A stretch of DNA of 32,000 nt, taken from NCBI GenBank assembly GCA_002794465.1, contig MTSL01000041.1:47113-79112 (forward strand), written 5' to 3'. Shown piece by piece: positions 1 through 25,207 of the stretch. Under the pieces are notes generated by a model, which did no database searches, was not told the DNA's origin, and was given only the letters and a program-made list of their open reading frames with translations. This stretch comes from Paramicrosporidium saccamoebae KSL3 (lineage: Eukaryota > Fungi > Cryptomycota). The translations under genes and the position numbers were made by a program. The first letter of the stretch is position 1, and each line of letters opens with the position of its first letter.

Positions 1-3000
1 TTCAATTTGTAACTTTTCCATTTGTCGCTCCACTTCAACCGGTCGTTCCTTGGGCATCTCCTCGGGTAATACCATATTCCCAAACATGCAATATGACAGC
101 ACTTGTTCCAAAGACCATTTTTGCTGAGCGTGTCGCTCTACAATCAACGCCAGATCGCGGGCCCGATGGGACATGGGATGTCTCATAGATCTTCCCAGCA
201 GAGTCAGCACGGCCCGATGGGCATTGATCGCCGTAGCCCGAAGCAAAGGCCCCAGAAGCGGTCGTGGCACCAGGGCCCCATCAAAGAGCGGTCCAAAGGG
301 CGGGATGGAAGACTCCCGGAAGATGGAGATGCGGTATAGATGGCCTGCACCAGGCGTGACTACCAAATTCACATTAGCATAGTCCCCACGGAACGACGGG
401 CGGTAGTCTCGGTAATGTTCGTTCCATATAATGTGCACGTGGTCATTGCCAATGTGGCGTTTCTTGCTGATCATTTTAGAGTCAGAGTCATCGGTGGAGA
501 CCAAGGTGGGCGCCTCGTGGAAAACGACTTCAGTTGTAGAGTTACAATGATAGAGTGCCTTGTTGTCTATAGTCATTCCCAACTCTAAACCGCCTGTGTA
601 GCCGGGATGGGTGGCAAGATCCACTCGCCATCCCAAAGACCGGAGCAGCTCATTATATGCGTCGCTGCACATTTCGGGCGTGTTCTGCAGGATCGTCTGC
701 TCATCCTCCTGGCCAGGCCCAATATACACCACAGCTACTTTAACCACCTTGCGGGCGTGCTTCATGTCCAATCCCTTCAAATCACGGCCCAGTCCCGTTG
801 TCTTGGTCAAGACGTGGATAGGAAGGGGCGAATCGGCATTCTCAAGAGGAGATAGGAAGCCGAAATGGGCAAGAAATTGACGACAATAGTGGAAAGGAGG
901 GATTGCCTTTGTGGAAGGCTGACTGGGGAGGATGGCCTCATGTCCAGCAGCCTTGGCATATTGTTGTGCCACCTGTCTCTCTGCCTCAATCTGTTCTTTA
1001 CAATACTCCTCTACCCGCTGGACCGCCTCCCGCTGTGCCTCGGGAACGGGATTGGGAAGAGACAGACTTGTGCGTTCCTTGTTGATGCATCCCGGATGCT
1101 CCTCCCCAATATAATCCAACAATTCCTTCAGCATGTCCGTCTTTTCAAGCTCCACATTTCCCTCTTCATAGATGGGCATCATCTTTGGCGACCGTGTAAA
1201 CTCTCTCAACGATTTAAGGGGATTGAATCGCTCAATGGTATCGCTGACCCGGCCCGAAATCCAATCAAAGTCCCTTGCCCGCCCCACATCTTGCCACTTT
1301 TCTGGTGCATCCGCAGGGAACAGAGAGGAGGTGCGATGATCAAACGTCTCTATGAACGAGTGCGAATTCCAAGTGAACCGACCAGCAGCATTTCGGATAG
1401 TGATTCGCATCTGCGGCTTGCCATCAAGATCAGCTCCACCAATTTGTTGCAGAGCCAAAATGGCCGAATCTGCCAGACTAAAGTAGAGGATCCTATCTTC
1501 TCCGGGCTGGTGCCAGGCTGGTTCTGAGATTTGCGAATTGACCATGGTTGGACCATATTCTGGGCTGAAATTCTTCAAATGATGCATCAGATGAACAAGT
1601 GCAAATTCAGCCGCCTCTTTGGCTAAACACGGCTCCTCCTCATCCTCAGAAGTGCTGTCGTCCCGGGACGGCGGCGGGGGTAGACGATCAAGTGACTTTC
1701 GTGGCGAAGGTGACACGGCGCCGCTTCGTATTCCCATGACACTTTGTGATCGACTCATGGCTGTCAAGGTTGCCTTCCGGAGCGACTCTTCTAAAACTGC
1801 AAACACCTGTTCCCGCAATGAATGATGCTTAGTCAACCAATCGTGTGGAAGCACCATCAGCCATTCCAAAAGCGTCACAATTAGCTTGGAAATTAGTTCG
1901 TCCTGCTCACCTGCCGGTGCATCCACATCCGAAAAGGCCGAGCGGATGCTCGTAACTAAACGTTGCACTATCAATACTTCGCGCTCAATGCCAAATTTAC
2001 CCTGAAACAGTGGAGCAAGTTGGGCAAGTGCAAGAAACTGATCAAAAATGATTGGCAAAACTGCAGCGTCCTTTGGAAGCAAATGGTCCAGTAGCACATT
2101 TAAATATCCATCAACCAATGTTTCACTTGGTGTTGTCTGTGCCAATAGCTCGTTGATCAGCAACACATTGACGACAGACAGAAGAATAGAGTGGGTGGGC
2201 GGGTCGTTTCGGGTATATTCTTGAAGATCAAGCATAAACAGTAAATCCTTGACCTGCATTTTAATCCCATCCAAGTCCATCTCGCCCGCACAAGTGATTG
2301 GGATTGCAGACATTATGGGTAGGGGCGCTTCAATCCTCGGAACTGTCAACTTTGGATATACATCGGGCAGAATTGCAATGGCAGAGACGGTGCGCATCAT
2401 GGGCACCAAGACTCCACTACGGTCCAAGGGTATTTGACTATTTAACATTCCCGCAATGCACTTTAGGAAAGCCGGAATGAGTATTGTCGAGCCGGGCAGT
2501 TGTCTTCCCAAAACATGCGATGCACAGAGCATAATGACTGTAGCCACCGCATCGTCCTTGTCACTAAGCCCATTGACAATGGCCAAATAGAAGCGCACAT
2601 AGAACTCGTCCGGGAAGCACATGTCGGGGAGACGGCAGAACATTCTGCAAATGGCGGAATATGCCAGACAGCGACTGCGTTCATACATTTTGGCTGGCAA
2701 GTCACAGGCATCCAAGAGCGTAATGGCTGATTCATAAATAGGTGGAAGGGGACGGCAGATGTACGCCTGCGTTTCACGAATAGCCAAGAGTTGCTCAAAT
2801 ACCTGCACAATGCAGCGAATCGCAATCTCGTGGATTTCAGGCCGTTCAATGGCATTGATATCTCCCAAGGCCCGGAGCATATTTCGCCACAAAAAGACAA
2901 TGTTTTCCTTGGCCCAAGCGGATTCTGTCCAGGAAAGGAAATGATCCGCAGAAGTGTGCGTCTGCATGGCCTTTCCGTGGGCAGGATTTGCGAGTTCAGC

Positions 3001-4686
3001 ACTCATCGCCCTTCCGATGGGATTATTCATGTTTAGCAAAGACAGCAGCTGTGATCCCTCAAAGGTGCCATTTCTAATCTGCTTCCGCTTCACTGACAAA
3101 TCCTCCAGGGTCTTTTTGTCAACTGAAAACACAATCTCCGACATCATCCCCGTTACAGTCATCACCGTCTTTGTCCATTCCTCCACGACTAGAGACCACC
3201 GGGTGCATTTATTGAGCACAATGGCAAACCGCTCCCAGTGGGCCTGAAGAACCGTCTCGGATCTAATCCAGGTCCCATAGAGCGTCTCAGCCAGCAATTG
3301 GGAAAACTCTTCCGCTGAATCCGGATTCGAAACAATGGCATATTTGTTCTGTTGTGTGAGCTGGAATTCCATAAGATTCATCAGTGTTGTCAGCAGGCAA
3401 TCCCACGACTCGCGACTAAGGGTAAAGAACACTTTCATGGCCAGTCCGCGTAGAAAATAAACCCCTTCGCGGTACAACTCAATCTGTTCGGTTGACTGTC
3501 CTTGCGTGGATCGGCCGTCATAGAGTCGGGAGAGGAGACCCATGTAGAGCTGGAGATAGTAATCGAGAACACCATCGGCCTCAATCCCAACCTTTTCCAT
3601 CAGATTGGCAGTCACCTTGTTAGTAGCCATTGCTTGCAAAAACGCAGGACGTCTCTCGCGGGAATTAAAGACCCAAGTGCGAAGAACTCCCACCGCAATC
3701 TTGATAACCGGTTTATAAGAATAAGGAAGCAGTAGACTTTGTCCAATAATTTCATGGATCAGCTCCAAGTCTTGCGTCGAGCTGAGCAGCATTTCCTGCA
3801 GGATAAAGGTGGCCACGGGGATAAATGTCCCCGACGAGTTTCTCTCAAACAAGTCCGGACTCTGAATCGTCCACATTGCAAAGTAGCGCATCAAAATGGC
3901 CTGCAGAGCATGTGGACAGCCATTGACAAATCCTGTCGTCTTTTCCGTCAACCCTACCCGTTTACAAACATTGGGATAAAGCGGAGTCAAATAGTACTCC
4001 CGAAAAAGTCCATACAAGAATCCCGTGGAAGATCGGTCCGCGTCAGTGTCAAAAGTCATGAAATTCAAAATTTCGGTGAATAATGTCAGCGCCTGTTCCT
4101 TTGGTGTCACCATGGCGGGTGCGGGAAATAACGGCGGCTCATTGTCGGGAGCCAAGGGAAATGGTCTTTGGTCTAGCATAATCATCTCGCCCTCGGGAAC
4201 AAACAACGACAATGGCACACACGACTCGAAGAGAGTGACTGCTTCTGGGACAACACATGACTCGTCACGGAGCCAGAGCATGAGGAGCTGGAGACCTTCG
4301 CGACGCAGCGCAGGATGGTTGCCTGGATGGAGGAGCACTCGGATAATATTGCAGAGTTGGTCACACTGTGCCATAGTCGCAACCTCATGTCTCAAGAATT
4401 TCAAAACTCGCGTCAGCAACAAGGGCACCTTGAAGTGCTCATCCACATCTCTATTTAGGCTCCTTTCAAACTTTGCATAAAATTCCTTGTCAACATTGAG
4501 ACGCTCGAGGGTCAAGTTATATGTCTCGACCACAAAGGTGACCAGTTGGTCAGCCAAGTCCTTGTAGACCTTGTGCTGCTCCGACTCGTTACTGCTTTCA
4601 AGAAAGGCGAGCAGTGCCCCGAGTCTATATTTGTACTTTTGCGTGCCATCAAGGAAGGGCCGTAGTTTTTTCGGCACACGTTCCAT
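1..4686 (-). CDS. RALGAPA: Ral GTPase-activating protein alpha subunit-like (N-terminal region plus C-terminal Rap/Ran-GAP domain); 3' end beyond the window
   Basis: ATG at 4686 opens a frame that reads to position 1 (1562 codons); the track lists no closed ORF in this frame, consistent with no internal stop. N-terminus MERVPKKLRPFLDGTQKYKYRLGALL...LLHPGNHPALRREGLQLLMLWL resembles the RalGAPA N-terminus. C-terminus has Rap-GAP motifs VAVVYIGPGQEDE, LGWRVDLATHPGYTGGL, KKRHIGNDHVHIIWNEH, PFGPLFDGALV, LLRATAINA. Confidence 0.85.
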   Translation of the reverse strand, partial: MERVPKKLRPFLDGTQKYKYRLGALLAFLESSNESEQHKVYKDLADQLVTFVVETYNLTLERLNVDKEFYAKFERSLNRDVDEHFKVPLLLTRVLKFLRHEVATMAQCDQLCNIIRVLLHPGNHPALRREGLQLLMLWLRDESCVVPEAVTLFESCVPLSLFVPEGEMIMLDQRPFPLAPDNEPPLFPAPAMVTPKEQALTLFTEILNFMTFDTDADRSSTGFLYGLFREYYLTPLYPNVCKRVGLTEKTTGFVNGCPHALQAILMRYFAMWTIQSPDLFERNSSGTFIPVATFILQEMLLSSTQDLELIHEIIGQSLLLPYSYKPVIKIAVGVLRTWVFNSRERRPAFLQAMATNKVTANLMEKVGIEADGVLDYYLQLYMGLLSRLYDGRSTQGQSTEQIELYREGVYFLRGLAMKVFFTLSRESWDCLLTTLMNLMEFQLTQQNKYAIVSNPDSAEEFSQLLAETLYGTWIRSETVLQAHWERFAIVLNKCTRWSLVVEEWTKTVMTVTGMMSEIVFSVDKKTLEDLSVKRKQIRNGTFEGSQLLSLLNMNNPIGRAMSAELANPAHGKAMQTHTSADHFLSWTESAWAKENIVFLWRNMLRALGDINAIERPEIHEIAIRCIVQVFEQLLAIRETQAYICRPLPPIYESAITLLDACDLPAKMYERSRCLAYSAICRMFCRLPDMCFPDEFYVRFYLAIVNGLSDKDDAVATVIMLCASHVLGRQLPGSTILIPAFLKCIAGMLNSQIPLDRSGVLVPMMRTVSAIAILPDVYPKLTVPRIEAPLPIMSAIPITCAGEMDLDGIKMQVKDLLFMLDLQEYTRNDPPTHSILLSVVNVLLINELLAQTTPSETLVDGYLNVLLDHLLPKDAAVLPIIFDQFLALAQLAPLFQGKFGIEREVLIVQRLVTSIRSAFSDVDAPAGEQDELISKLIVTLLEWLMVLPHDWLTKHHSLREQVFAVLEESLRKATLTAMSRSQSVMGIRSGAVSPSPRKSLDRLPPPPSRDDSTSEDEEEPCLAKEAAEFALVHLMHHLKNFSPEYGPTMVNSQISEPAWHQPGEDRILYFSLADSAILALQQIGGADLDGKPQMRITIRNAAGRFTWNSHSFIETFDHRTSSLFPADAPEKWQDVGRARDFDWISGRVSDTIERFNPLKSLREFTRSPKMMPIYEEGNVELEKTDMLKELLDYIGEEHPGCINKERTSLSLPNPVPEAQREAVQRVEEYCKEQIEAERQVAQQYAKAAGHEAILPSQPSTKAIPPFHYCRQFLAHFGFLSPLENADSPLPIHVLTKTTGLGRDLKGLDMKHARKVVKVAVVYIGPGQEDEQTILQNTPEMCSDAYNELLRSLGWRVDLATHPGYTGGLELGMTIDNKALYHCNSTTEVVFHEAPTLVSTDDSDSKMISKKRHIGNDHVHIIWNEHYRDYRPSFRGDYANVNLVVTPGAGHLYRISIFRESSIPPFGPLFDGALVPRPLLGPLLRATAINAHRAVLTLLGRSMRHPMSHRARDLALIVERHAQQKWSLEQVLSYCMFGNMVLPEEMPKERPVEVERQMEKLQIE

Positions 4687-4815
4687 GGCTGATGATTGAA
4701 CTGGAAGACTACAAACAGCAAACTTGCCAAATGGGGGGTGCGAAAATATAAACTAAAATATTTATTACCCGTTCCTGGTCCGCCCGACCTTGACGGGGCA
4801 TTATTGTTCAAGTCT

Positions 4816-5566
4816 TCACATGAGCAGACAGCTATCCTTGTTTGAATTCTGACGAGCCCTTTTCATCGTATTCATTAAGCGTCGCCGCTTCACCTCGAGC
4901 TCACTAGAAGCGTCGTCCATCATTTGAGTGTCATATGTCTGATTCACAAGCTGCACCGGGAGAGGCTTCTCTGGAGACGGCTGCCTAATTTCTGGCGGAG
5001 CAGGGATGGGTTCTGTTGGCTTTTCTTGCAACCTGTGCTGAATATGATCTATGGCGCGGGCGGCCAAGGCCAATTTTTCGACCAGTGTTTCCTTGTATTG
5101 CTCCAAGGCTGCTAAAGCCTCGTCTGGCAGCTTCTCAATTAAAATAACTTCAGACTCTATGCCATTTGGCGCAAATGAACACGAAATTTGATCATTTTTT
5201 GTCATAATGTCCGTTACAGTAGGGCCCTCGGACGTTCCAACAGCAAGTAATGCTTTCTCTCGATGGGATGGTTGCCTTTCCACTGAAGTCACCCTAAAAG
5301 CTGACTCTGTGGCAAGCAACTTTTTCTGTATGTTACGGTACCTATGAAAATGAGGATTGCAGCTCGCATACTTGTCCTTCAAGTCCCCAGAGCTACGGTT
5401 ATCAAAGGTCAATGTGGGATCGGCCAGCATTGAGCTCCAATTTCCCACACCATACTAACAAGTAGTTAGCACGCAAACAATATCCAGGTACCGTCTTAAT
5501 GCCATTCAAAAGCGAGTCTTCTTCCTGTGGAAGCCAAGGACGCCTCTTTCTAGGAGTACCCAGCAT
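4816..5566 (-). CDS. Telobox (TRF-like) single-Myb protein with coiled coil, basic NLS-like patch and C-terminal CaaX (CLLM); exons 5566-5492, 5454-5372, 5341-4816, about 227 aa
   Basis: Removing GT-AG introns 5455-5491 (37 nt, GCTAAC branch site) and 5342-5371 (30 nt) gives MLGTPRKRRPWLPQEEDSLLNGIKTYGVGNWSSMLADPTLTFDNRSSGDLKDKYRNIQKK, matching the telobox consensus (W..EE...L..G...G.G.W; LKDKWRN). The protein ends EVKRRRLMNTMKRARQNSNKDSCLLM-TGA. Confidence 0.85.
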
Positions 5567-5709: not shown

Positions 5710-6123
5710 ATGCCTGCTCCCAAGGATTGGTGCGTTGGATGCACCAATAAAGTGTGCACTTACCAAACCAACCGTACTGCATGCTGGATGGACGTCCTGC
5801 TCATTGCGTCCATCGCCGTCCTTTGTATTACTTGTATTGGGATTGCAGCTCTTGGTGTGGCGAGCTATGTATGCGCCCCAGCGGCACGCAAGACTTGTGC
5901 AGCAAAACAGGTTGGAGCCCCGCCGGTAATAGTCAGCATTAATCAGGAGGATGAGTTGCATATGGCACCGATCTCCAGGTCACAGCCAGTGACGCCACAC
6001 GTGTCGCTCGGCGGTAGCACTACAATTACTTCCTCGCCAAAATCGATTCCGTCAGACTGGTTCAATAGGAGCGATGGACCCACATTTTCTGATATCATGA
6101 AGGAAGAAAGTGTTGGAGAATAG
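5710..6123 (+). CDS. Small Cys-rich single-pass membrane protein, unknown function; start uncertain
   Basis: ORF (first ATG 5710; track starts at GTG 5692) with a Cys-rich N-terminus, a hydrophobic segment VLLIASIAVLCITCIGIAALGVASYVC and a Ser/Pro-rich tail. Confidence 0.55.
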   Translation: MPAPKDWCVGCTNKVCTYQTNRTACWMDVLLIASIAVLCITCIGIAALGVASYVCAPAARKTCAAKQVGAPPVIVSINQEDELHMAPISRSQPVTPHVSLGGSTTITSSPKSIPSDWFNRSDGPTFSDIMKEESVGE

Positions 6124-6346
6124 ACAAATCTTTGATAGCTGATGATAGACTAATAAACGCATTTACAAGTGGTGAACGTTGAGATGATGGCTTGGGCGTG
6201 AGGATCCTCAGCCTGAAGTAAAACTTACTTAGACCCAAGATGATGGCACATATGATGTAGTAAACTGAATGGCGAATCATTTGTTCATAGTGCCGTTCTC
6301 GTCTAATCTATTGCTGATATATTAAGGAACCTGTAAAAAAGCTCAC

Positions 6347-6467
6347 AAAGTACTAATAAAATATCAATAAAATGCCAACAAAGTACCGACAGAATACCAT
6401 CAAAATGCCACCAAAATACCAACAAAGCACCGACAAAATACCAACAAAGCACTGACAAGATGCCAAC
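6347..6467. repeat. 11-bp degenerate minisatellite, 11 copies (consensus about AAARYRCCRAC)
   Basis: Consecutive units AAAGTACTAAT, AAAATATCAAT, AAAATGCCAAC, AAAGTACCGAC, AGAATACCATC, AAAATGCCACC, AAAATACCAAC, AAAGCACCGAC, AAAATACCAAC, AAAGCACTGAC, AAGATGCCAAC. Confidence 0.85.
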
Positions 6468-6549
6468 AAAGGAGTTTCCTTGCTGCCTAGCAAAGTCTGT
6501 AGTGATTATTCCACCACATAACATTTCAATCAAACGCCACGACACCACA

Positions 6550-6655: not shown

Positions 6656-7408
6656 TTAGCGAAATGGCATGTGGGGAAAAACTGTGCCCAGTTCCCCGTC
6701 CTGCGGGTTCATGGGAATGTACACTGCGACGGCTGGCCCATTATTCGTGGTCGTCGGATCAATTCTTGCCAAGACCGGCGTCGCATTCGCAGAATACGGT
6801 GGCGGAGAGTCGGAATGTCGTATTTCATGCATTATGGGCGGCAGTTGTTTCCTCTTCTTTTCAGATTCTCCATGCTGGGAAACAATCACTTTGACAAACA
6901 CGAGCACAATCAGAACTAGGCCGGCCAATATAACAATGGGAATGACAATGAATTCTTTCCGCACGTTAAAGTGCTGCACGGGGGCTTGACGACTGGTTGT
7001 GCTGTTTGAGATGCAGAGTCGGATAGAGTTTTGGCAGGACATCCCGGACGGACAGCCATATTGGGAGGAGCCTGGAATGCACTTCGCATAACAAAAGCCT
7101 CGGTAGCAGGCCAGTCCATCATGGCACTGCTTGTTCTCCACACACATACCATATAGCGTCTTCCGGAAAAGACACCAATTCTTATGGCAATACATGGCAG
7201 GACTGCAGTCTTCATCGCCCATACAATTTTCCTGTTTCGTCTTGCCCGGTGGGTGGCAGGTCAGTAATTCACTCTGGCACACCAAGCCTTCAGGGCAGTT
7301 GTGCTGCGCGACCGAGCAAGAGTCATAGAGTTTAGTGGGAAGTTGACAAGTGTTTTCGTGGCAGTTATTTGAGAGACAGTGCTCGTGTTTGACACAGAGC
7401 TGAGACAT
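6656..7408 (-). CDS. Single-pass membrane protein with five 4-Cys modules (EB/Dickkopf-like spacing) and a cytoplasmic PPPY motif
   Basis: 250-aa ORF with modules such as CMGDEDCSPAMYCHKNWC and CVENKQCHDGLACYRGFC, a TM segment FIVIPIVILAGLVLIVLVFVKVIV, and tail motif SPPPYS. Confidence 0.8.
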   Translation of the reverse strand: MSQLCVKHEHCLSNNCHENTCQLPTKLYDSCSVAQHNCPEGLVCQSELLTCHPPGKTKQENCMGDEDCSPAMYCHKNWCLFRKTLYGMCVENKQCHDGLACYRGFCYAKCIPGSSQYGCPSGMSCQNSIRLCISNSTTSRQAPVQHFNVRKEFIVIPIVILAGLVLIVLVFVKVIVSQHGESEKKRKQLPPIMHEIRHSDSPPPYSANATPVLARIDPTTTNNGPAVAVYIPMNPQDGELGTVFPHMPFR

Positions 7409-7463
7409 CCCCAGCGTTAGCCACTTAATCTGCCATATCAGGAAAACTTTTAAAATATGCCCT

Positions 7464-8552
<1,089 letters not shown>

Positions 8553-8951
8553 TTTTGCGCTTTGTTTGCCACTTGTCACACCCCGCACACAGTGCACGAA
8601 ATGCACAAAGCTGGCACAAGACACTCGCCATTGGGCTTGAATTATTTTGTGCTAGTGCCCGTCTCAAATCCTACTTTCACTCCATGCAAGACTGTACACT
8701 GATAGCGATAAGGATGAATTTGGGGACCGCGGGATCTGATTGGTGGCACATTGTCATTACCCCAAATAGGCAAGTGACCAGGACTGGCAAATTGCAAAGT
8801 TCACACTCCACCCTTGACTGGTGGTTGCGTGCATCGACTCGCAGCGCCCCTTCCAGTTTCACCGCAGCATCCTTTGTGGCAAAGCTGCCAAGGCGCTGGT
8901 TCGCCAATCGTTGTATAAAAACAGTAGCAGGACCTTTATTGTCTATTTCAG

Positions 8952-8980
8952 GTATATTGAGATGTCTCACTGACGCATAG
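8952..8980 (+). other. Probable 29-nt intron in the 5' leader of the homeodomain gene
   Basis: GTATATTGAGATGTCTCACTGACGCATAG has a GT donor, CTGAC branch site and TAG acceptor, and matches the size class of the other introns. It lies downstream of a TATAAAA at about 8914. Confidence 0.5.
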
Positions 8981-8995
8981 ATAACTTTGTTTTGG

Positions 8996-10384
8996 ATGCC
9001 TGAGGGAATCAGAGATACCGATACGCACCGTATGTCTCGTGGACGGTTAAAGGAAGAGGGTGATGAGCATTCGCATTCACATCCCCAAGGCGGCATGGAA
9101 ATGAATCCATATGGGTGGAGCACTGGATGGCCGGAGCATTTGGCCAGCAATGAGTTGTTGCATGCCGCATCCATCTCACCGAACATGTTGCGGCCCGGTG
9201 CCCTTGGATTACGCTCAAATACCTTATCGGTGTCGCCATTTGCCACTCAACTGCAGCATATAAACCCCGACGAGCCATTGAACCCGAACCAAGTTAAATT
9301 TGTAAATGCCACGGTTGAAATCCTGCAAAGCCAAATTCGCAAAGAGGAGGCCCCCAAAAAAAAGAGAACAAGGACCACTCCTGAGCAGCTAAGGATTCTT
9401 CAAAAGGCCTTCTCGGCCGACTCCATGCCAAACTCTAGTGCGAGACTCACCTTGGCTAAGAAGCTGGGAATGAATGCACGCGCAGTACAGGTCTGGTTCC
9501 AGAATAGACGTGCCAAGGAGAAACTTGAGGCGAAGCGGGCCGAGGTGGGGCAGGTGAGAGATCGTGGCGGCTCACTGCAGAACATGACAATGAAGGACCC
9601 GATGAACTATGTTAGAGCATCCCTGCCTACTCACACACGGCTTCCCCAGCGACACGAAGGTGGAGATGAAGAAAGTCACCCCTTGTATGATCTTGGAATG
9701 TACTTTGGAGACCATTCACTGGCCCAGTACACATCTGGATTTGAGCTGAGTCCGTATGGATACACGATGGAGGGTCTGCCGCAGCAGCAACTGTTTGATG
9801 ATCTTGAGGAAGCCAGCGATGTGTCTACCAATGAAAGCGGAGAATCAGCCAGTCGTCAGCAGTACACTCGATTCCAATCCATGCCAGCGGTTGCATTCTC
9901 CTATGATGGAATGGGTACTTCCCTTGGTCTTGTTTTTGATAATCCACACAACGAAAACGGAGCAGAGGGCGACTCAAAGGTGGGGGAGCGAACAAACTCT
10001 GTCGATGCCCTTGCCATGGCAGGAGATGTGGAGTCTCAGGTAAAGATCTTTTCGACGCCGGCGGCCGGCGAAGCTTTCCTTTCTGCCCCACTGGGACAAG
10101 GCATTCCGATGCCGGTGAAGCAGAGAAGCTTGTCCGTCCCAGAGATATCATCTAGCTACACATCAAGAGGGCCCGTGGAGATTCCGCCGCTATTTAGAAA
10201 TCATGAGCTGTTGGTAATTAAAGAGGAAGACGCTCCCGCAGCAGAAGCACCACAAGTTGCTAAGAGGCTTTCCAACGTGGAAGTTCCTCCTTCCAGTCTC
10301 CTTGGTACATTTTCGGGGATGGCCAACATCATGGCTCTTGACGACATTCAGGCATATTTGGACGGGATGAGCAACGAACTTTAA
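8996..10384 (+). CDS. Homeodomain transcription factor
   Basis: KKKRTRTTPEQLRILQKAFSADSMPNSSARLTLAKKLGMNARAVQVWFQNRRAKEK is a canonical homeodomain with Q50. Start ATG is 8996 or 9032. Confidence 0.93.
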   Translation: MPEGIRDTDTHRMSRGRLKEEGDEHSHSHPQGGMEMNPYGWSTGWPEHLASNELLHAASISPNMLRPGALGLRSNTLSVSPFATQLQHINPDEPLNPNQVKFVNATVEILQSQIRKEEAPKKKRTRTTPEQLRILQKAFSADSMPNSSARLTLAKKLGMNARAVQVWFQNRRAKEKLEAKRAEVGQVRDRGGSLQNMTMKDPMNYVRASLPTHTRLPQRHEGGDEESHPLYDLGMYFGDHSLAQYTSGFELSPYGYTMEGLPQQQLFDDLEEASDVSTNESGESASRQQYTRFQSMPAVAFSYDGMGTSLGLVFDNPHNENGAEGDSKVGERTNSVDALAMAGDVESQVKIFSTPAAGEAFLSAPLGQGIPMPVKQRSLSVPEISSSYTSRGPVEIPPLFRNHELLVIKEEDAPAAEAPQVAKRLSNVEVPPSSLLGTFSGMANIMALDDIQAYLDGMSNEL

Positions 10385-10558
10385 TTGCATCGACGCACAC
10401 ATTTTGATTTACTAAATATTCAGAGTTATAACGGCGTTATATTGCCAATAAACGTGTATAAATGAAGACGCAATATCGAGAGTATATATGTGAGGGCTGG
10501 ATAAGACGAGAGAATTTAATTTCAGTGGTTTCGTATTGTATTGCTGTGTGGTGGGAGT

Positions 10559-10615
10559 TTAGAGTTATGGGGTTTAGAGTTGAGTATTGAGAGTCAAGAG
10601 TCAAGAATTGGGAGT
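10559..10615. repeat. Weak ~7-bp degenerate repeat (TTRAGAG-like)
   Basis: TTTAGAG TTGAGTA TTGAGAG TCAAGAG TCAAGAA TTGGGAG in the spacer between the homeodomain gene and DBP7. Confidence 0.35.
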
Positions 10616-10906
10616 ATTGCCGCGCAGTGAAAAAGATGCTAAAGCATGGGTAATGTCAATACTTCCGCTTCTCGCCTCCGACTCTTCCTTCCACCACATA
10701 TCCCTAGATACCCAGCTAGTCATTCCACTGCTTTACAGCCCGATGGGATCAAATAAACTTCGTGTCTATCCAGCCTAGTATCTCGTATGTAAGACTATAA
10801 GGGTCGACATTAATTGATAATTTCACAACTCACCACATATACAGGAAACGTTCATTAATACTGCGCTCAAAAGATATGGGCATGGCTGGGGACACACCGG
10901 GGTTAC

Positions 10907-12691
10907 ATGGCCAGCGACTTTACTAGTCTTGGGTTGGATCCTGCGCTTTGTGCTGCGGTCCAGGCAGCCTTCTCAATTGAGAAGCCGTCTGATATACAAG
11001 AAAAGGTTATTACTACGGCACTCGGCTTAGAGACACCTCGTGATATACTCATCCGTTCGCGCACTGGTTCAGGAAAGACGCTGGCATTCTTGCTGCCCAT
11101 TCTGCATCGGCTGCTGCTCGAACATCGCCAGAGTGGCAGGACTAGAGAAGCTGCTCGGATGATGGGGACACAATTACTGGTGGTAGTACCAACCCGCGAG
11201 TTGGCTGCCCAGTCACACCAAACTCTGGAGCGTCTTCTCGCAAAACTGCATGGTGCTGATCATTGGCTCGTCAGTGGTACCCTTTCTGGAGGTGATCGTC
11301 GCAAATCGGAAAAAGAGCGACTTCGGAAGGGCGTTCATATTGTCGTCGGCACACCGGGTCGTCTAGTGGACCATCTGAACAATACAGAACGGTGGGCCAA
11401 GCAAATTTCGGCCTGTCGATGGGTCGTTTTTGATGAGGCGGATCGATTATTGGATTCTGGTTTTGAAAAGTTTGTTAAAGAGATTTTGGGTGCGCTGGGA
11501 AAGGGCAGGATCGATAGACTGCAAGTTTGCTTGTGTTCTGCAACAGTGGATGGCAAAAGACAGGACTTGTTTGGATACAAATTGACTGATCCGTTGCTTG
11601 TGTCGGAGGGACCTCTCCGTTTAAAGGCTGCAGATACAAAGACACTCATTACAAATGATTTTAACACTCAACTGGAGCATTTTTATATTGTTTCCCCCAC
11701 AAAAATGCGCCTCGCAGCGCTTCTTGGCTTCCTTGAAGAGTCCTTCTCCAACGCAACACCCCAGAAAATAGTCTTGTTTACAATCTGTTGCGACACGGTG
11801 GATTTCATCTCGTTGCTATTCAATGATCCCACATTCAAAATGCTTCCCAAAGATGTTAACAAATTCAAGCTGCACGGTAGTTTGGAGCACAAGACCCGCA
11901 TCGAGACATTCAATGCCTTTACAAAGGAGACTCGTAATTGTTTATTGGTCTGCACAGACGTGGCTGCACGTGGACTCAACTTGAGTCATGTTTCATGTAT
12001 TGTTCAGTATGATGCGCCTTGCGACATGAACGATTATATCCATCGTGCTGGGCGTACTGCTAGACAAGAGGAAACTGGAAAGTCGGTTCTCTTTCTAATG
12101 CCGTCCGAACGGGATTATATACCAGAATTAGAAAAGAAGAATCTCAAGCTAAAGAAACTCCGATGGGAACCTTTGGTGGAGCGTGTTGCAACAAAGGTAG
12201 ACATAAAAAGCGCGGAAAAGGTGACAGTCGAAGAAACTATTCCTGAAGAAGACCTTACCACCGTAAATCTGGATACAAGAAAGCGCATCTTTGCATGGCT
12301 AGAGCAGCTTCAGGGAAAAATCAAGACCAAGGGACAGCTCTTTTCCCTGGCAAAGTCTGCATATCTGTCGTTCATCAGAGCATACGCGACCCATCCCACT
12401 GTGGAAAAGTCTATTTTTCATATCAAAAAGTTACATTTGGGACATATTGCGGCCACTTTTTTGCTTGATGAAGCACCCAAGGCAGTGGCTGCCAATCGTG
12501 GAAAAGAGGTGCCAGAGGGCAAACCAAAGCGCGATGAGAAGGATTTCAAGGGCGGGAAAGGTGGCAAAGGGAGCAAGGGAGACAAAGGAGGAAACTCCAA
12601 AGGGCCATTCAAGCCAAAGCGTGTGATTAGCGAGTTTGATGCAGGTGATATCGATGCAGTGTTTACAAGAAAACTAAAGAGACCCAAATAA
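10907..12691 (+). CDS. DBP7: DEAD-box RNA helicase DBP7/DDX31-like (60S biogenesis)
   Basis: Q motif, TGSGKT, PTRELA, GTPGRL, DEAD, SAT, TDVAARGL, HRAGRTAR; DBP7-type GGDRRKSEKERLRKGVHIVVGTPG and C-terminal FHIKKLHLGH. Confidence 0.9.
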   Translation: MASDFTSLGLDPALCAAVQAAFSIEKPSDIQEKVITTALGLETPRDILIRSRTGSGKTLAFLLPILHRLLLEHRQSGRTREAARMMGTQLLVVVPTRELAAQSHQTLERLLAKLHGADHWLVSGTLSGGDRRKSEKERLRKGVHIVVGTPGRLVDHLNNTERWAKQISACRWVVFDEADRLLDSGFEKFVKEILGALGKGRIDRLQVCLCSATVDGKRQDLFGYKLTDPLLVSEGPLRLKAADTKTLITNDFNTQLEHFYIVSPTKMRLAALLGFLEESFSNATPQKIVLFTICCDTVDFISLLFNDPTFKMLPKDVNKFKLHGSLEHKTRIETFNAFTKETRNCLLVCTDVAARGLNLSHVSCIVQYDAPCDMNDYIHRAGRTARQEETGKSVLFLMPSERDYIPELEKKNLKLKKLRWEPLVERVATKVDIKSAEKVTVEETIPEEDLTTVNLDTRKRIFAWLEQLQGKIKTKGQLFSLAKSAYLSFIRAYATHPTVEKSIFHIKKLHLGHIAATFLLDEAPKAVAANRGKEVPEGKPKRDEKDFKGGKGGKGSKGDKGGNSKGPFKPKRVISEFDAGDIDAVFTRKLKRPK

Positions 12692-13071
12692 ACCACTAGA
12701 TTAGTTTGATAGCTGTGTATAAAAGACTGAAAATTTCACGACTAGTGCATAGCAGGTTAAAGAATCTCCCGGTTAATGCGAGAGTCAATGTATTGTAAAT
12801 TGGAAATTTCACAATTAGTGCGATAGTTAATTTATGGCAAGTCACATGTTCAACGATTGGTTAGTGTATAGCAAATCACATTTCCAACGATTGGGATTAA
12901 AGCTATCATGCAGCAAATCAAATCCCTCTCCTATCCTACAATTGGCACTTGTGTATACTATTGGGGATTATGCAATTTTGGTCCAATGGCATTTGGCCCC
13001 TGGGGAAACACTGTCGCTGATTGGCTGGTCCGGGCATAAATAATTCCCAACTGAGTTTGCGTCCGACAGAA

Positions 13072-15108
13072 ATGTCAGCGCCTCGCCTCATCTCGGGCAA
13101 TCAACAACTTTCCCAGCAAAATGTCAAAACCATCTCCAAACGCTGCCAGGAGCTTATTGGCCGTGCCGCCTGTATCGACCAGATCCGCATAGACGTGATT
13201 GAGCCGGTCCTGGGATACTATGCGGCCCAGAGTCCCCCCAAGACGCTTGCTGACGACCCGGTATTTTTAGCGTGGCGACTCCTCCGACAAGGGACGATGC
13301 TGTGTCTGTTGCTAAACAACTTTCGTTCGGGAATCTTGGAGACGTTTAATCCCCTAAAGTCGGAAATTAGTGAAAGGAGATTTTCAGATTCGTCGGCAAA
13401 GGAGAACATAAAGATATTCTTGGCAGCCTGTAAGGGCGACTTGTATATGACTGAGGATCAGCTTTTTCCCGAGGGACAGCTCTTCTCTGACGACACTAAC
13501 ACCCTCACCAAGGCCATTGCCATGACCGACACTTTCTTCCAACGCATCGGCAGGATTCAAGCTATCAATTTTGACAAGAAGCTTGAGCAGATGCGAGCGG
13601 AGAACCCGCTCTTTAGTCTAGAACCACCAGAGTCCCAACATACCACAGTGGATGAGAAAAACTTGGATTTGCGTCTGAGGGTCATCAAAGAGATTCTGGA
13701 GACTGAAAGACAATATGTGGGCGACCTGGACAAGCTACAAAGCTATGCAGAAGAGCTGAGAATGGACGAAATCATCTCTCCAGAGGCCCACAGGACAATA
13801 TTCGCAAATCTTGATAAACTTGTCGACTTTCAACGTCGCTTCCTGCTGAAAATGGAGCAAAAGCTGTCCAAAACAGTGCTTAACAATTTGGGGGCATCTT
13901 ACATGGCCGGTGTGGCCCAACTCTTCCTGGACGACGAAAAGGGCTTTTCGGTATACGAAGTATTCTGTACCAACCATAAGAAAGCCACGGAAAAGGTGGT
14001 AGAGGAGATGCCTAATTTGATGAAAAAGGAACGTGTGATGGATCCAAAGACTGTACTGCCTGCCTATCTTATTAAACCGACGCAGCGGATTTGCAAATAC
14101 CCGTTGCTCCTCAGAGAGATGCTTAAACAGTCCACACCCGATGCACCCGATAGAGGTGATCTTGAAAAGGCCTTTACCATGGTTAACAGTGTGACCCTTC
14201 GAGTCAATGAGGTGAGCAGAAGAAATGCCATGGCAGCGGCAGCAGATGAAATGGCAGCCTTCATAAAGGACTGGAAGGGATTGGATAGAAAGATGCTCGG
14301 ACCGTTATTGCTACATGATCTGGGCACCATTGTAATGGGAGACAATGCTAAGGAACTTGATCTATATCTGTATGAAAAGGCACTGATTATGTGTGGAAAG
14401 AGTAAGAGCATTTCAGAAATCAAATTTGGACCTCGCAAGGTGGCCAAAAATCAGCTTGTCATCAAGGGACACATTTTCATCTCACAGATCGCCTCGGTAG
14501 TCAAGACACCCCACAATGGAGATGGTAATTTCTCCCTAAAGATGACTTATCGGAATGTTGACACTGAGTACTGCACATTACGCTTCAACATGGAAGAAAA
14601 GATGAAGAACTGGGCGGTCACTATGGAAAAAATTATTGCGCTCAATAAGCCCAAGGAGCTACCAAAGCCGCCTGTTGTTGCATCTGCATCACTGGTAAAG
14701 GAACGGCGGCGTCGTTCGCTCGTGGCTGCCGCCTTACCGCAGGTCGCACCCAATGTTCCCGATTCCGCAACGCCTCCTACTACTGAGGAGCCGATGCGTT
14801 TAAAGATATTCTATGGGAAGGATATTTATGTGGCCCCCGTATTTATTGATATTGCTACTTTGACAGACCTCAAAACCGAAGTGCTGAGAAAGCTATTAGC
14901 CGCACATAAGATTTTAGGGGCTACCTTTAACTACCGGGTTGAAGACATTTCCCTTAAATACTTTGACGACCAAAAGGATCTGATTAGCCTGCTGGATGAT
15001 ATAGACGTGGACACGGCGCTAACGTTTAGTCCCAACAGCATTTCAGTCAGGGTGCTTTCTAAGAATGGCAAGACTGTCCTCGGACTGGAATCGGTTGATA
15101 GCGAATAG
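13072..15108 (+). CDS. CDC24: Cdc42 guanine-nucleotide exchange factor Cdc24/Scd1 (CH-like, DH, PH, PB1)
   Basis: N-terminal WRLLRQGTMLCLLLN and FLAACK, DH domain (VIKEILETERQYVGDL; YLIKPTQRICKYPLLLREM), PH-like region, C-terminal PB1 (LKYFDDQKDLISLLDDIDV). First ATG is 13072. Confidence 0.9.
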   Translation: MSAPRLISGNQQLSQQNVKTISKRCQELIGRAACIDQIRIDVIEPVLGYYAAQSPPKTLADDPVFLAWRLLRQGTMLCLLLNNFRSGILETFNPLKSEISERRFSDSSAKENIKIFLAACKGDLYMTEDQLFPEGQLFSDDTNTLTKAIAMTDTFFQRIGRIQAINFDKKLEQMRAENPLFSLEPPESQHTTVDEKNLDLRLRVIKEILETERQYVGDLDKLQSYAEELRMDEIISPEAHRTIFANLDKLVDFQRRFLLKMEQKLSKTVLNNLGASYMAGVAQLFLDDEKGFSVYEVFCTNHKKATEKVVEEMPNLMKKERVMDPKTVLPAYLIKPTQRICKYPLLLREMLKQSTPDAPDRGDLEKAFTMVNSVTLRVNEVSRRNAMAAAADEMAAFIKDWKGLDRKMLGPLLLHDLGTIVMGDNAKELDLYLYEKALIMCGKSKSISEIKFGPRKVAKNQLVIKGHIFISQIASVVKTPHNGDGNFSLKMTYRNVDTEYCTLRFNMEEKMKNWAVTMEKIIALNKPKELPKPPVVASASLVKERRRRSLVAAALPQVAPNVPDSATPPTTEEPMRLKIFYGKDIYVAPVFIDIATLTDLKTEVLRKLLAAHKILGATFNYRVEDISLKYFDDQKDLISLLDDIDVDTALTFSPNSISVRVLSKNGKTVLGLESVDSE

Positions 15109-15120
15109 AAAATAAATGGA

Positions 15121-15422
15121 ATGATTTGTATACATGTGAGGTTAATCAATGTCAAGGGAGTGATGATTTGTGTACATGTGAGGTTAATCAATGTCAAAGG
15201 GATAATTTGTATACAGTATAACTTACTCAATGTCAAAGGGGTGATTTGTATACAGTATAACTTACTCAATGTCAAGGGAGTAATGATTTGTATACAGTAT
15301 AATTCACTCAATGTCAAGGGAGCGATTTGTATACGGTATAATTTACTCGATATCAAGGGAGTGGTTTGTATACAGTATAATTTATTCAACGTCAAATGAA
15401 ACGATTTATATACAGCATAATT
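15121..15422. repeat. 39/42-bp minisatellite, 7 full copies plus a partial, with palindromic TGTATACA core
   Basis: Units such as ATGATTTGTATACATGTGAGGTTAATCAATGTCAAGGGAGTG and ATTTGTATACAGTATAACTTACTCAATGTCAAAGGGGTG, directly abutting with no spacers. Confidence 0.92.
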
Positions 15423-15917
15423 CTACCAAACAGCCATTGGAATGTTGAACAGATGCCTGTAGTCCTTCCTTTGGGTAACAATGCGTTCTTCTGACTGAAC
15501 TCGTTGCGCACGTATGACATGTCTCTTTCTTAGTGTCCGCTCTAGCGCTGGCTGTTCACTCAACATCCTCCCAATCAAGCTTGTACTTAGTGTCGGTGTC
15601 TGAAGCATGCCGTCGCCAGCGGTAATGCGCAACTTTATAGCCATGGACTGTTAATGCTATTTCCATTTTGGGCAACGCATGTCGACATTATGATTACCCA
15701 TTATGGAAGCCTAATGTCAATCGTCTGGAGCCCAGGAAGACGTCACCTTCCGATTGCCTTATTTGGTGCTGGAAGGCGGGGGCATTGATTGTTGCATGGT
15801 GGGGAGCATGACTCTGTACATTTGAGGGCTAATCTTGCCGTCTCTCGCCTCTGACTCAAAATAGATCCTTTATTGGGGCTATTGATCTGCTATACACACA
15901 CACACTCTCTCTCTGTT

Positions 15918-20880: not shown

Positions 20881-22583
20881 TTACTTTTTGCTTTGTATCT
20901 TTCTCGTCAGGATCGCAGCAGCCTCTTCTTCTTTCTGCTTCTTCTCCGCTGCAAGGGCTTCTTTTTCTAACAATTCAGCATCTAGAATGGTGGTAGGCTG
21001 CGTTTCTTTATACGCTGGGGTCACAAACTTTGGATCCTTTTCAGCTCGCTCCGCATACCGTAACAGTGCCTCTCGCGGATCCTCATCTCTCCGAGTGTCA
21101 CGAAGCACATTGCGCATAATGGACTGGGTGACCGAAGAGCCCAGTCGACCTCCAGTACCGGGTCCATCGACAGGCATCTCGGGACGACTGGAGGAACGCG
21201 GATCCTTTCTCATTTTGATGCGAATGCGTTTGAGAGAACGGCCTTCAAGCGTCTTGAACAGCGGCAGGGCATTGGGGGTCTGAATGCCGCCCACAGTAAA
21301 GGCCATCATGGACTCTTTCTTCTTGACATTGGATCGAGAGAGGGGCAGAATGGCGCCCTTTTGGCTGAGTTGGGGATCATATAGCATTTGCACATTTCCA
21401 TCCCCGCAGCCAACAATCAGTTGATTAAGCACTGTCGGCCACAACAACGACACTGCGCTACTATCGCCAATACAAACGGGCTCAGTCACTGCTTCCAATG
21501 AGACAGTATCAAAGAATGCCACAGAACCTGAGGATTTTCCCTTTCGAGCCGACACACAAGTGGCAATTAGATTTTGATCGGGACTAAAGACGCAACTAGT
21601 TTCATCATTAGTGTTGGGCAGATCATTGACTACTCCGATCGGCTTGGAGAAGGAGCGCACATCCCATAGTTTCAAAGTGTCATCGGCACCCCGGGATGTA
21701 ATGTATCGTCCCGAAGAATCTATTGCCAGACAAGAAGTTTCGCCGTTGTGAGCATCGCTAACCATAGAGTCTGCATGTAGCCACGGTCCCTTTGTGGAGT
21801 AAATCCTAATGGATCCATCTGCAGTTGCCACACAGAGATTGGTATTATCAGGCATCATGGCGAGGGCAGTGACTCCAGGTGATCTTCCGCCCGTCTTTCC
21901 TTGTGGACGCACCACCAGAACCGTTTCGCAATTCTTTTTTTCTGCATCCCAAAACCTCACAGTCCCATCCAATCCGGCCGTCACAAATCGGTCCTCTCCA
22001 TACCATTTTCCAGCCGTAACTGCACTTACATGGCCCGCCGTCTTCCGCATGTCCCGCAGATACGGATCACCTTTTGCATATTCCATCACCAATGCGCCAT
22101 GTCGATCCAGTAACACGGGAGTCCCACCACCCCCCACCAGCAGCCAGTCAGAGGCGGGTGAAAATTGCAGGAACCGGAGGGGACAGCCCTCGGTAGGCTC
22201 AAGGTAGCGGAAAGGAGAGAGGGTGTGATCCATTCCACCAAAATCCCACAAAGAGAGTGTATAGTCGTGACTACCCACCGCAAGGCGCGCCCCACTCTTG
22301 TCCAGTGACAATGCACTAATAGTCTTCCGGTGCTGTTTGAGGGTGATACTGTGTGTCACTGGCAATTCAATAGAGTATTCCTGCAGCTCTTCAGCCGCTG
22401 GACGTTTAGCTATGGCCGGCGATTCTAGTCGCCGTGTTTCTGCCAGTCGCGATTCTGTTAATCCGTCACTCTCTGGTGCTTCTTTACCAAACCCCCTTGG
22501 TATCAACTTTGCCAATTCGTCATAATCTGTGGAATTTCTATAATCCTATAGGGCGGTTAAAAGAGAACAAGAAATACCTTCAT
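20881..22583 (-). CDS. WDR70: WD40 protein WDR70/GAD-1-like; 6-nt first exon (22578-22583), intron 22546-22577
   Basis: PRGFGK N-terminus, LWDFGGMD, KGDPYLRDMRKTAGHV, SRGADDTLKLWDVRSF, DEDPREALLRYAE and PAYKETQP are typical of WDR70. A 32-nt intron joins ATG-AAG in frame to DYRNSTDYDELAKL. Confidence 0.9.
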
Positions 22584-22610
22584 GTTGGGAAACAGCACTG
22601 ACCAATCATA

Positions 22611-22721
22611 CTGTACAAGACTATCCATATTATACAAACTACCCGTATTGTATATTGTATAAAGCTATCTATTCAAATTGTACAAAACTTTCCATTCATC
22701 CTGGACAAGACTATCTATTTT
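22611..22721. repeat. Degenerate 20-24-bp minisatellite, 5 copies (about YTGTACAARACTATCYATT)
   Basis: CTGTACAAGACTATCCATAT, TTGTATAAAGCTATCTATTC, TTGTACAAAACTTTCCATTC, CTGGACAAGACTATCTATTT; the last copy contains the DHX35 stop codon. Confidence 0.7.
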
Positions 22722-24945: not shown

Positions 24946-25207
24946 TTAGAACTCGGCTAAAATTCCACTACTTCATGTGGCAATGCTATTGGATCACATA
25001 ACGGCGCTCCTTAGACCGTTATAAACGGTAATGCCTCTGATTGGGCTGCAAGTGACCTGTGGAGCTCAAGTCATACTCATTCTATTTTTACCTCGGATCA
25101 TGATTGGTGCATCTTTTGTAACACTGTTTGAGAAGCGGAGCCGTGTTACATAGGCCTCCAACTAGAGCCGCTTGGTCAGACTAGCAGATCCTCAGACGCA
25201 CCAATCC

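Follow-up and report, generated by a model that had tools for sequence, protein, structure and literature searches.

A 32,000-nucleotide stretch of contig MTSL01000041.1 in assembly GCA_002794465.1 of Paramicrosporidium saccamoebae, an intranuclear parasite of amoebae that lies on the branch toward Microsporidia, contains a small spliced gene on its minus strand (5566..4816 in the stretch as a whole, hereafter the window). The protein that it encodes opens with a telobox Myb domain of the TRF type and closes with a CaaX box, CLLM, that fits the rule for modification by farnesyltransferase (FTase). That this is a genuine, separate gene of P. saccamoebae is well supported, and so, from comparison of the orthologues, is selection on the C-terminal Cys-aliphatic-aliphatic-Met/Gln. 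The explanation that appears to fit best as a whole is a farnesylated telobox protein anchored at the nuclear envelope, where it would tether DNA, a reading to which we assign a probability of roughly 0.4. Farnesylation at Cys224 is, by itself, a likely proposition, whereas a role as a dedicated tether of telomeres seems rather unlikely. The building blocks are each well known; their combination, telobox plus CaaX, is undescribed and occurs in a narrow lineage.

Gene structure and the telobox Myb domain

The gene runs from an ATG at 5566 to a TGA at 4818..4816, and, once its two GT..AG introns (37 nt and 30 nt) are taken out, has a coding sequence of 684 nt for a protein of 227 amino acids (aa) that reads MLGTPRKRRPWLPQEEDSLLNGIKTYGVGNWSSMLADPTLTFDNRSSGDLKDKYRNIQKK ... 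ELEVKRRRLMNTMKRARQNSNKDSCLLM-stop, with ...KRRRLMNTMKRARQNSNKDSCLLM* as its C-terminal end. All of its parts lie on the minus strand. Exon 1 (5492..5566, 75 nt, MLGTPRKRRPWLPQEEDSLLNGIKT) codes for a basic N-terminal arm and Myb helix 1, exon 2 (5372..5454, 83 nt, YGVGNWSSMLADPTLTFDNRSSGDLKDK) for helix 2 and the beginning of helix 3, and exon 3 (5341 down to 4816, 526 nt including the TGA stop) for the remainder of the protein. Because the length of intron 1 (5455..5491, 37 nt, phase 0; GTACCT...GCTAAC...TTAG, with GCTAAC as a branch-like motif) is not a multiple of three, the intron must be removed for RKRRPWLPQEEDSLLNGIKT to continue into YGVGNWSSML; the Myb domain of human TRF1 aligns without a break across this junction, and two orthologues from environmental relatives (L002 and L005, described below) have a counterpart of 56 nt each at the identical phase-0 codon boundary. 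Intron 2 (5342..5371, 30 nt, GTATGC...CATAG) is in frame and stop-free and, therefore, is not provable from sequence alone, but its retention would insert 10 extra aa into the recognition helix, and the orthologues lack it and have an uninterrupted DLKDKYRN. Introns this small are normal in the P. saccamoebae genome, given that the neighbouring TPT gene also needs a 30-nt intron taken out (7724..7695, GTAAGC...CTAATGCTGTAG), over which the joined peptide fits the Pfam TPT profile continuously at positions 175-291. A likely polyadenylation signal, AATAAA, stands at 4761..4766, 50 nt 3' of the stop, and AATAAA follows the stop also in the three relatives, L002, L004 and L005, hence in all four sequences. 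When the sequence was re-read and spliced, the original prediction turned out to have described the two tiny introns, the Myb N-terminus and the terminal CLLM accurately to the base. It was also right that the track of open reading frames (ORFs) conceals the Myb domain, as only a 54-aa ORF (5402..5566) and a 210-aa ORF (4816..5448) are listed there.

The telobox Myb domain occupies residues 6-60 (5320..5551, with both introns inside) and has an intact helix-3 motif, LKDKYRN. It exceeds the cutoff of the Pfam family Myb_DNA-binding, PF00249 (27.2 bits versus 24.4; 4.2e-6; residues 8-56). Among sequences in the PDB, human TRF1 is the best match (E 1.5e-9), followed by zebrafish Terfa (3e-4), TRF2 (6e-4) and Tbf1 (3e-3); the CHD1 SANT domain (7e-3) and then plant TBP1 are weaker, and the c-Myb-type MYB21 reaches only E 0.39. 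This ranking places the domain nearer to the telomere-repeat-binding Mybs than to the c-Myb and SANT types and bears out the TRF-type assignment made at the outset. The telobox motif of helix 3 is GDLKDKYRN, compared with DLKDKWRN in the top library matches. The K, D and R of LKDKYRN correspond to what we take, after the assignment of Court et al. (2005), to be the base-contacting residues of TRF1, and the basic N-terminal arm (RKRR) is present as well. From a Myb domain of this type one would expect TTAGGG-like duplex DNA to be the ligand, and telomeres are the obvious place where such sites form an array.

An exhaustive HMMER search of 1.84 billion representative proteins returned 974 proteins at E<=0.001, among them 180 at E<=1e-10; the best 150 of the 974 were inspected and are of the telobox Myb type, with the nameable short two-Myb matches being hypothetical proteins of Mucorales. 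Within the 227-aa protein itself, no TRFH domain (Pfam, E<=1), second Myb or linker-histone domain was detected, and residues 61-227 show no Trp/Tyr-spaced second repeat, so that 6-60 is the sole Myb stretch. The protein thus falls outside the TRF/Tbf1, Tay1 and plant SMH/TRB architectures that PMC7952879 surveys.

Conservation of the CaaX terminus

The CaaX box, CLLM, spans residues 224-227 (4819..4830, minus strand), with the stop directly after it at 4816-4818, and follows the FTase rule in each respect: Cys at position -4, aliphatic residues at a1 and a2, X drawn from M/S/Q/A/C, and location at the very C-terminus. Three environmental relatives carry the telobox gene, and a CaaX box stands right before the stop in 4/4 sequences. 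The closest, L004 (protein P0030), is a JGI metagenome contig that is cut within the gene and is followed by the same RalGAP start, its RalGAP product being 94% identical to RalGAP of the window; the telobox gene ends CLLM-TAA here, against CLLM-TGA in the window. L002 (P0077), a 49.6-kb ENA contig, is far more distant (Spb4 54%, RalGAP 50% and telobox protein 41% identical to the window) and ends CLLQ-TAA; its gene order is syntenic (Cdc24, Spb4, homeodomain, ..., small membrane protein, telobox, eIF2B-epsilon, RalGAP), and a contig from another sample, L003, is identical to it. L005 (P0152), also an ENA contig, is 72% identical to P0077 and 40% to the telobox protein of the window, and ends CLVQ-TAA. 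P0030 comprises 48 aa that are 77% identical to residues 180-227, and P0077 comprises 268 aa; these are the two proteins among the best 150 of the 974 HMMER matches that align outside the Myb domain, and P0152 was added by a profile search. A word-indexed search with the full protein gave one Myb-only match, and the orthologues surfaced only in the exhaustive HMMER and profile searches. More diverged orthologues, for instance in Mitosporidium, Rozella or Nucleophaga, may lie beyond the best 150 of the HMMER matches.

Retention of the terminal box in orthologues had been preset as a test of the original prediction, and the box is kept in all of them (CLLM, CLLQ, CLVQ). The Cys occupies position -4 throughout, while the linker that precedes it varies in length and sequence (NSNKDS, SSKIAPSDNN or SSKIASGDRN), and the box itself has changed only by V for L at a2 and Q for M at X, both within the FTase rule. 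The box is retained despite a protein divergence of about 50% in the neighbouring housekeeping genes and saturated synonymous sites. Over the last 49 codons, the window and L004 have 19 identical codons, 19 that differ only synonymously and 11 replacements; within the box, the codons for Cys and for the two Leu residues differ synonymously only, as does the stop. By the Nei-Gojobori method, dN/dS is about 0.07 (pS 0.69) for the last 48 codons of this pair, and, between L002 and L005, 0.27 for the whole gene, 0.13 for the Myb domain and 0.29 for the last 40 codons. These ratios, together with the synonymous-only changes in the box, point to constraint on the protein and not on the DNA.

A terminus of this kind is rare in the sequences surveyed. 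When 177 stop-to-stop ORFs with a length of 100 aa or more, drawn from the window and seven loci, were compared, only one other had a canonical CaaX end, and that one is probably non-coding; a Cys at -4 occurs, among the best 150 TRF-like matches, only in the two orthologues and in none of the other 148. A metagenome scan with the three-sequence alignment yielded six loci, all of them unrelated Myb proteins without CaaX, and a profile search with the non-Myb part added no relatives from 5.8 billion proteins and matched nothing in the PDB. As far as these searches reach, the C-terminal module appears to be specific to Paramicrosporidium-like lineages. Full-text literature searches that combined telomere or Myb with CaaX or prenylation brought up only lamin reviews and no described telobox-CaaX protein, which, together with the survey of the best 150 matches, agrees with the earlier impression that none had been described.

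One might suppose that the CaaX-like end is not modified at all and owes its persistence, in a small soluble Myb protein, to some other cause or to limited divergence. There are just four sequences, from a narrow clade, and chance produces a canonical CaaX in about 1 of 175 unrelated ORFs; however, it would then have to be explained why the Cys-to-stop distance and the aliphatic character of a1 and a2 persisted over about 50% protein divergence while the length of the linker drifted, why the sole substitutions obey the FTase rule, and why this happened where synonymous sites are saturated. FTase is, moreover, reported to be present: a 2026 survey of small GTPases in the clade of Rozellida and Microsporidia lists both the alpha and the beta subunit for SB-Microsporidia (P. 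saccamoebae and Mitosporidium), and the beta subunit of geranylgeranyltransferase I (GGTase-I) only for rozellids (PMC13393502). An X of Met or Gln is a farnesyl-type ending and, therefore, is consistent with this enzyme complement. An unmodified end strikes us as quite improbable on these grounds.

All of this presupposes that the CLLM codons end a reading frame, and the public annotation does not contain such a frame. The genome, MTSL00000000 of Quandt et al. 2017 (PMC5701793), has the telobox gene buried in a 2082-aa model that covers <1..5430 of the window on the minus strand, carries RALGAP, Rap_GAP and ATG13 domains and begins at 5430, that is, at Met34. If this GenBank-derived call were correct, a single protein would join a Myb fragment to RalGAP and ATG13 parts, with the CLLM codons either spliced out or internal, and a GT..AG pair (4904..4859 or 4904..4832) does exist that could bypass the stop; MAKER, by which the genome was annotated, was also supplied with Trinity transcripts. 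Several observations nevertheless identify the model as a chimera of neighbouring genes. Its start falls inside the Myb domain; RalGAP has an ATG of its own, at 4686, that begins an uninterrupted frame of 1562 codons; the 130-nt spacer between the telobox gene and this ATG holds the AATAAA, which is conserved, as are the telobox stop and the ATG itself; in L002, the telobox gene and RalGAP have a complete eIF2B-epsilon gene between them; and the candidate bypass donor, GTGAGC at 4904, is missing in the closest relative, L004, where the sequence is AATGAAATC. The same annotation fuses a WD40 gene with a DEAH-helicase gene further along, and it came from MAKER run on a Rhizopus gene model, with keep_preds=1 (PMC5701793). 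An exact look-up of the ORF that begins at ATG 5430 gave no match. We consider it extremely improbable that the annotated fusion is right.

A putative envelope tether: mechanism, alternatives and significance

Between the Myb domain and the CaaX box, two conserved helical segments are predicted. The first, an amphipathic helix at residues 126-158 (5026..5124, minus strand; ...LAALEQYKETLVEKLALAARAIDHIQHRLQ), is a candidate dimerisation or coiled-coil element, in which L129, EQYK133-136, L143, L145, A146, I150, I153 and R156 are invariant in the three orthologues. A 3-4 spacing that connects L129, L132, K136, L139, L143, A146, I150, I153 and L157, six of them invariant, gives a heptad (a/d) pattern, assigned by eye. 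What had been proposed here as a coiled coil is thus a predicted 33-residue helix, taken from a poor AlphaFold2 model, with a heptad pattern; a dimerising coiled coil is, nonetheless, plausible, and the helix probably pairs two chains. The second segment, the basic helix ELEVKRRRLMNTMKRARQ (residues 200-217; 4849..4902, minus strand), combines KRAR with a polybasic patch upstream of the CaaX box. With E200, L201, E202, K204, R207, L208, T211, M212, K213, R214, A215, R216 and Q217 invariant, ELEVK-x-x-RL-x-x-TMKRARQ is near-invariant and provides a polybasic surface 6-20 residues ahead of the Cys. KRAR, of the monopartite type, and the N-terminal PRKRRP both match, by eye only, the consensus of a nuclear localisation signal (NLS). 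The AlphaFold2 model, built from a three-row alignment and of low confidence (mean pLDDT, the predicted local distance difference test score, of 48), was used for secondary structure only; it places Myb helices at 17-26, 28-35 and 47-72, a hairpin at 95-109, helices at 126-158 and 193-217, and a disordered tail at 218-227, with helix 193-217 as the best-predicted part (pLDDT about 75).

The tether would, accordingly to this layout, be a protein of four elements: the N-terminal telobox Myb, the amphipathic helix, the basic NLS-like (KRAR) helix, and a variable hydrophilic linker with the CaaX box. Cytosolic FTase would modify Cys224, whereupon the -LLM tripeptide would be clipped and the Cys methylated at the endoplasmic reticulum or nuclear envelope; the basic stretches would bring the protein into the nucleus, the lipid and the basic helix would keep it on the inner nuclear membrane, and the Myb domains would attach to duplex DNA of the TTAGGG type, with telomeric repeats as the most plausible target, so that this chromatin would be held at the envelope. 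The membrane half of this scheme has a direct parallel, in that GFP-NLS-CaaX and the farnesylated C-termini of lamin and Kugelkern bind and deform nuclear membranes, including those of S. cerevisiae, which has no lamina, and they act on protein-free liposomes too; an NLS plus CaaX suffices for action on the nuclear membrane (PMC2947476). The original prediction had invoked this very route, and the literature agrees with it even for lamina-free yeast.

The Myb type and the selected CaaX box would fit equally well, however, a nucleoplasmic telobox factor, active in transcription or at telomeres, on which the farnesyl group serves as a protein-binding handle or as a control of stability or trafficking, and not as a membrane anchor; the conserved helix ELEVK..RL..TMKRARQ just upstream could then be the site that binds a partner. 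There are precedents for a farnesyl handle on chromosomal proteins, namely, CENP-E/F and Spindly at kinetochores, and the plant MADS factor APETALA1 is farnesylated. What makes us regard such a handle as unlikely here is that no partner is known, that a basic helix beside a lipid is the usual second membrane signal, and that elsewhere NLS and CaaX alone are enough for association with the nuclear membrane (PMC2947476).

Granted a membrane, it might still be another one. The farnesyl group and the polybasic patch could hold the protein on the plasma membrane or endomembranes, in the style of K-Ras4B or Rac1, with the Myb domain kept off DNA until release or with a role outside the nucleus altogether. 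The 21 residues before the Cys include eight basic ones and no second Cys for palmitoylation, and a polybasic stretch plus farnesyl without a second Cys is the classic plasma-membrane signal. Yet the protein is dominated by a DNA-binding domain, bears an NLS-like stretch toward either end (PRKRRP and KRAR) and shows no obvious element for cleavage or release, and its basic cluster is not immediately beside the Cys; we see little prospect, therefore, that this is the explanation. A secreted effector that acts on the host nucleus was considered too and rejected: no signal-peptide-like N-terminus is seen, and the protein opens directly with the basic arm of the Myb domain.

Several points weigh against the envelope tether itself. 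The splicing of both introns and the 3' end of the gene are predictions from the sequence; no TTAGGG array or other telomeric array is present in the window or in the loci searched; and the AlphaFold2 model, besides being poor, is silent on dimerisation. The word 'conserved' rests on two deep branches, because the four sequences represent three lineages of one narrow clade. As the cases of K-Ras4B, on the one hand, and of CENP-E/F and Spindly, on the other, make plain, a farnesyl group also sends proteins with a polybasic stretch to the plasma membrane and can serve chromosomal proteins in binding other proteins. Finally, fungal TRF-type Mybs are often transcription factors and not telomere proteins, as in S. 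pombe Teb1 and in Tbf1 (PMC7952879). Since TRF-type Mybs are also ordinary transcription factors, the telomere half of a telomere-to-envelope tether is the weakest link, and promoter telobox sites would be equally compatible with the domain, with Tbf1 and Teb1 as precedents. Modification, dimerisation, location and DNA target of the protein are all, at present, features that we infer. It is doubtful, in particular, that a single farnesylated polypeptide replaces the multi-protein telomere-envelope bridges in this reduced-genome, lamin-less parasite lineage.

Even so, a telobox protein with a selected CaaX box offers a minimal, testable model of chromatin-membrane tethering, albeit one confined to a small, hard-to-culture lineage. 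To our knowledge, every described attachment of telomeres to the envelope is a protein chain that ends in a membrane protein, and sequence-specific DNA-binding proteins with a prenyl anchor are very rare; if the telomere reading were true, this would be the first lipid-anchored, sequence-specific telomere tether. The protein would also name one non-GTPase target of farnesylation in the clade of Rozellida and Microsporidia, where, for the other FTase-retaining members (Hamiltosporidium, metchnikovellids), such targets are unknown according to the 2026 survey (PMC13393502).

Neighbouring genes and comparison with known systems

The next gene on the same strand, separate from the telobox gene, is of the RalGAP/Rap-GAP type (1..4686, minus strand) and is uninterrupted up to the window edge; its frame matches Pfam Rap_GAP (1.6e-39) and RALGAPB_N, and the context of its ATG is the same in L004. 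Between the telobox stop and this ATG lies a 66-nt spacer block (4701..4766, minus strand; TAATAAATATTTTAGTTT.TATTTTCGC...CATTTGGCAAGTTTGCTGTTTGTAGTC), which includes the AATAAA and is 94% identical to L004, as opposed to about 69% of the adjoining coding synonymous sites that differ. We do not call this block an RNA, as it has no Rfam match and a fold z-score of -1.3, which is nothing unusual; it is probably the poly(A) signal together with the core promoter or 5' untranslated region of RalGAP. On the other side, an intronless gene for a small 137-aa protein (5710..6123, plus strand) diverges from the telobox gene, the two ATGs being 143 bp apart. The 137-aa protein has one hydrophobic, transmembrane-like stretch and belongs to no Pfam family, but its C-terminal motif SPKSIPSDWF..P[TS]FS[DE]I is common to the counterpart in L002 (9078..9602, minus strand; BLASTP 3e-9), so the head-to-head layout of the two genes is retained in this distant relative.

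Further along, a TPT transporter gene (minus strand), a homeodomain gene (8996..10384, plus strand), a gene for an Spb4-type DEAD-box helicase (plus strand) and Cdc24 (plus strand) stand side by side in 6656..15108, and a gene for a STE12-like factor is found at 25172..26431. A trio of TPT, transcription factor and RNA helicase also makes up the sex-related locus known from Mucorales and Microsporidia, where the transcription factor is of the HMG type. We only note this likeness, as L002 keeps homeodomain, Spb4 and Cdc24 together but no TPT gene is seen beside them; an HD1/HD2 pair, PSACC_01945/6, is discussed by Quandt et al. (PMC5701793), and the homeodomain gene of the window may be one of the two. 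The annotated model that merges the WD40 protein with the DEAH helicase comprises 1225 aa (20881..24739, minus strand), and a 516-aa 'TPT' model (6656..8552) may likewise merge the TPT transporter with a Cys-rich DUF7107 protein. The case illustrates that, in the public annotation of P. saccamoebae, adjacent genes are run together and small spliced ones are lost from view. Three repeats can be added to the inventory of the window: an intergenic tandem array 3' of Cdc24 (15118..15423; a 39-nt unit in 7.6 copies), another that separates the gene for the small membrane protein from the Cys-rich gene (6345..6471; an 11-nt unit, ACAAAATACCA, in 11.5 copies), and a coding repeat of 24 nt in 7.5 copies in the C-terminal part of a cyclophilin-RRM (PPIL4-like) gene (28704..28929, minus strand).

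With TRF1/TRF2, Tbf1, the fungal TRF-like proteins and Taz1, the telobox protein shares the Myb type, including K-D-x-x-R in the recognition helix and the basic N-terminal arm. However, TRF1/TRF2, Tbf1 and Taz1 combine a TRFH domain with a C-terminal Myb, whereas the present protein has its Myb at the N-terminus and a CaaX box at the other end, with no TRFH detectable. The plant Single-Myb-Histone (SMH)/TRB proteins, each with a single telobox Myb at the N-terminus and, C-terminally, a helical (coiled-coil) region for multimerisation, are alike in layout only, as the central H1/H5 domain is absent here (no Pfam match) and no homology beyond the Myb was found; plant TRBs, for their part, lack a CaaX box. 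The fungal tandem-Myb TTAGGG binders Tay1, TayL1 and Teb1, described as a family with two telobox Mybs near the N-terminus (PMC7952879), have in common with the telobox protein the near-N-terminal position of the Myb and the fungal lineage. Short two-Myb proteins of Mucorales, with a first repeat that reads YGVGNWKKIL...VDLKDRFRT, are among the best non-orthologous matches. The tandem-Myb family differs, nonetheless, in possessing two Mybs instead of one and an unrelated C-terminal part, and those two-Myb matches have no CaaX.

On the membrane side, B-type lamins, Dictyostelium NE81 and Drosophila Kugelkern resemble the telobox protein in combining a helical region with an NLS-like basic stretch and a CaaX box whose last residue is Met. 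Unlike lamins and NE81, it has no intermediate-filament rod (no Filament match in Pfam) and no Ig-fold tail, and its helix measures only about 33 residues; lamins, NE81 and Kugelkern, conversely, lack a sequence-specific DNA-binding domain of their own. The job proposed here, holding telomeric DNA at the inner nuclear membrane, is performed by Taz1-Rap1-Bqt4 in S. pombe, by Ndj1-Mps3 and Sir4-Esc1 in S. cerevisiae, and by TERB1-TERB2-MAJIN-SUN1 in mammals. No homology of the telobox protein to any of these named bridges was detected, and TERB1, too, bears a Myb-like domain. All these bridges are multi-protein chains that lead to a transmembrane or membrane-associated partner, whereas, in the tether that we propose, one and the same polypeptide would bind the DNA and insert a lipid into the membrane.

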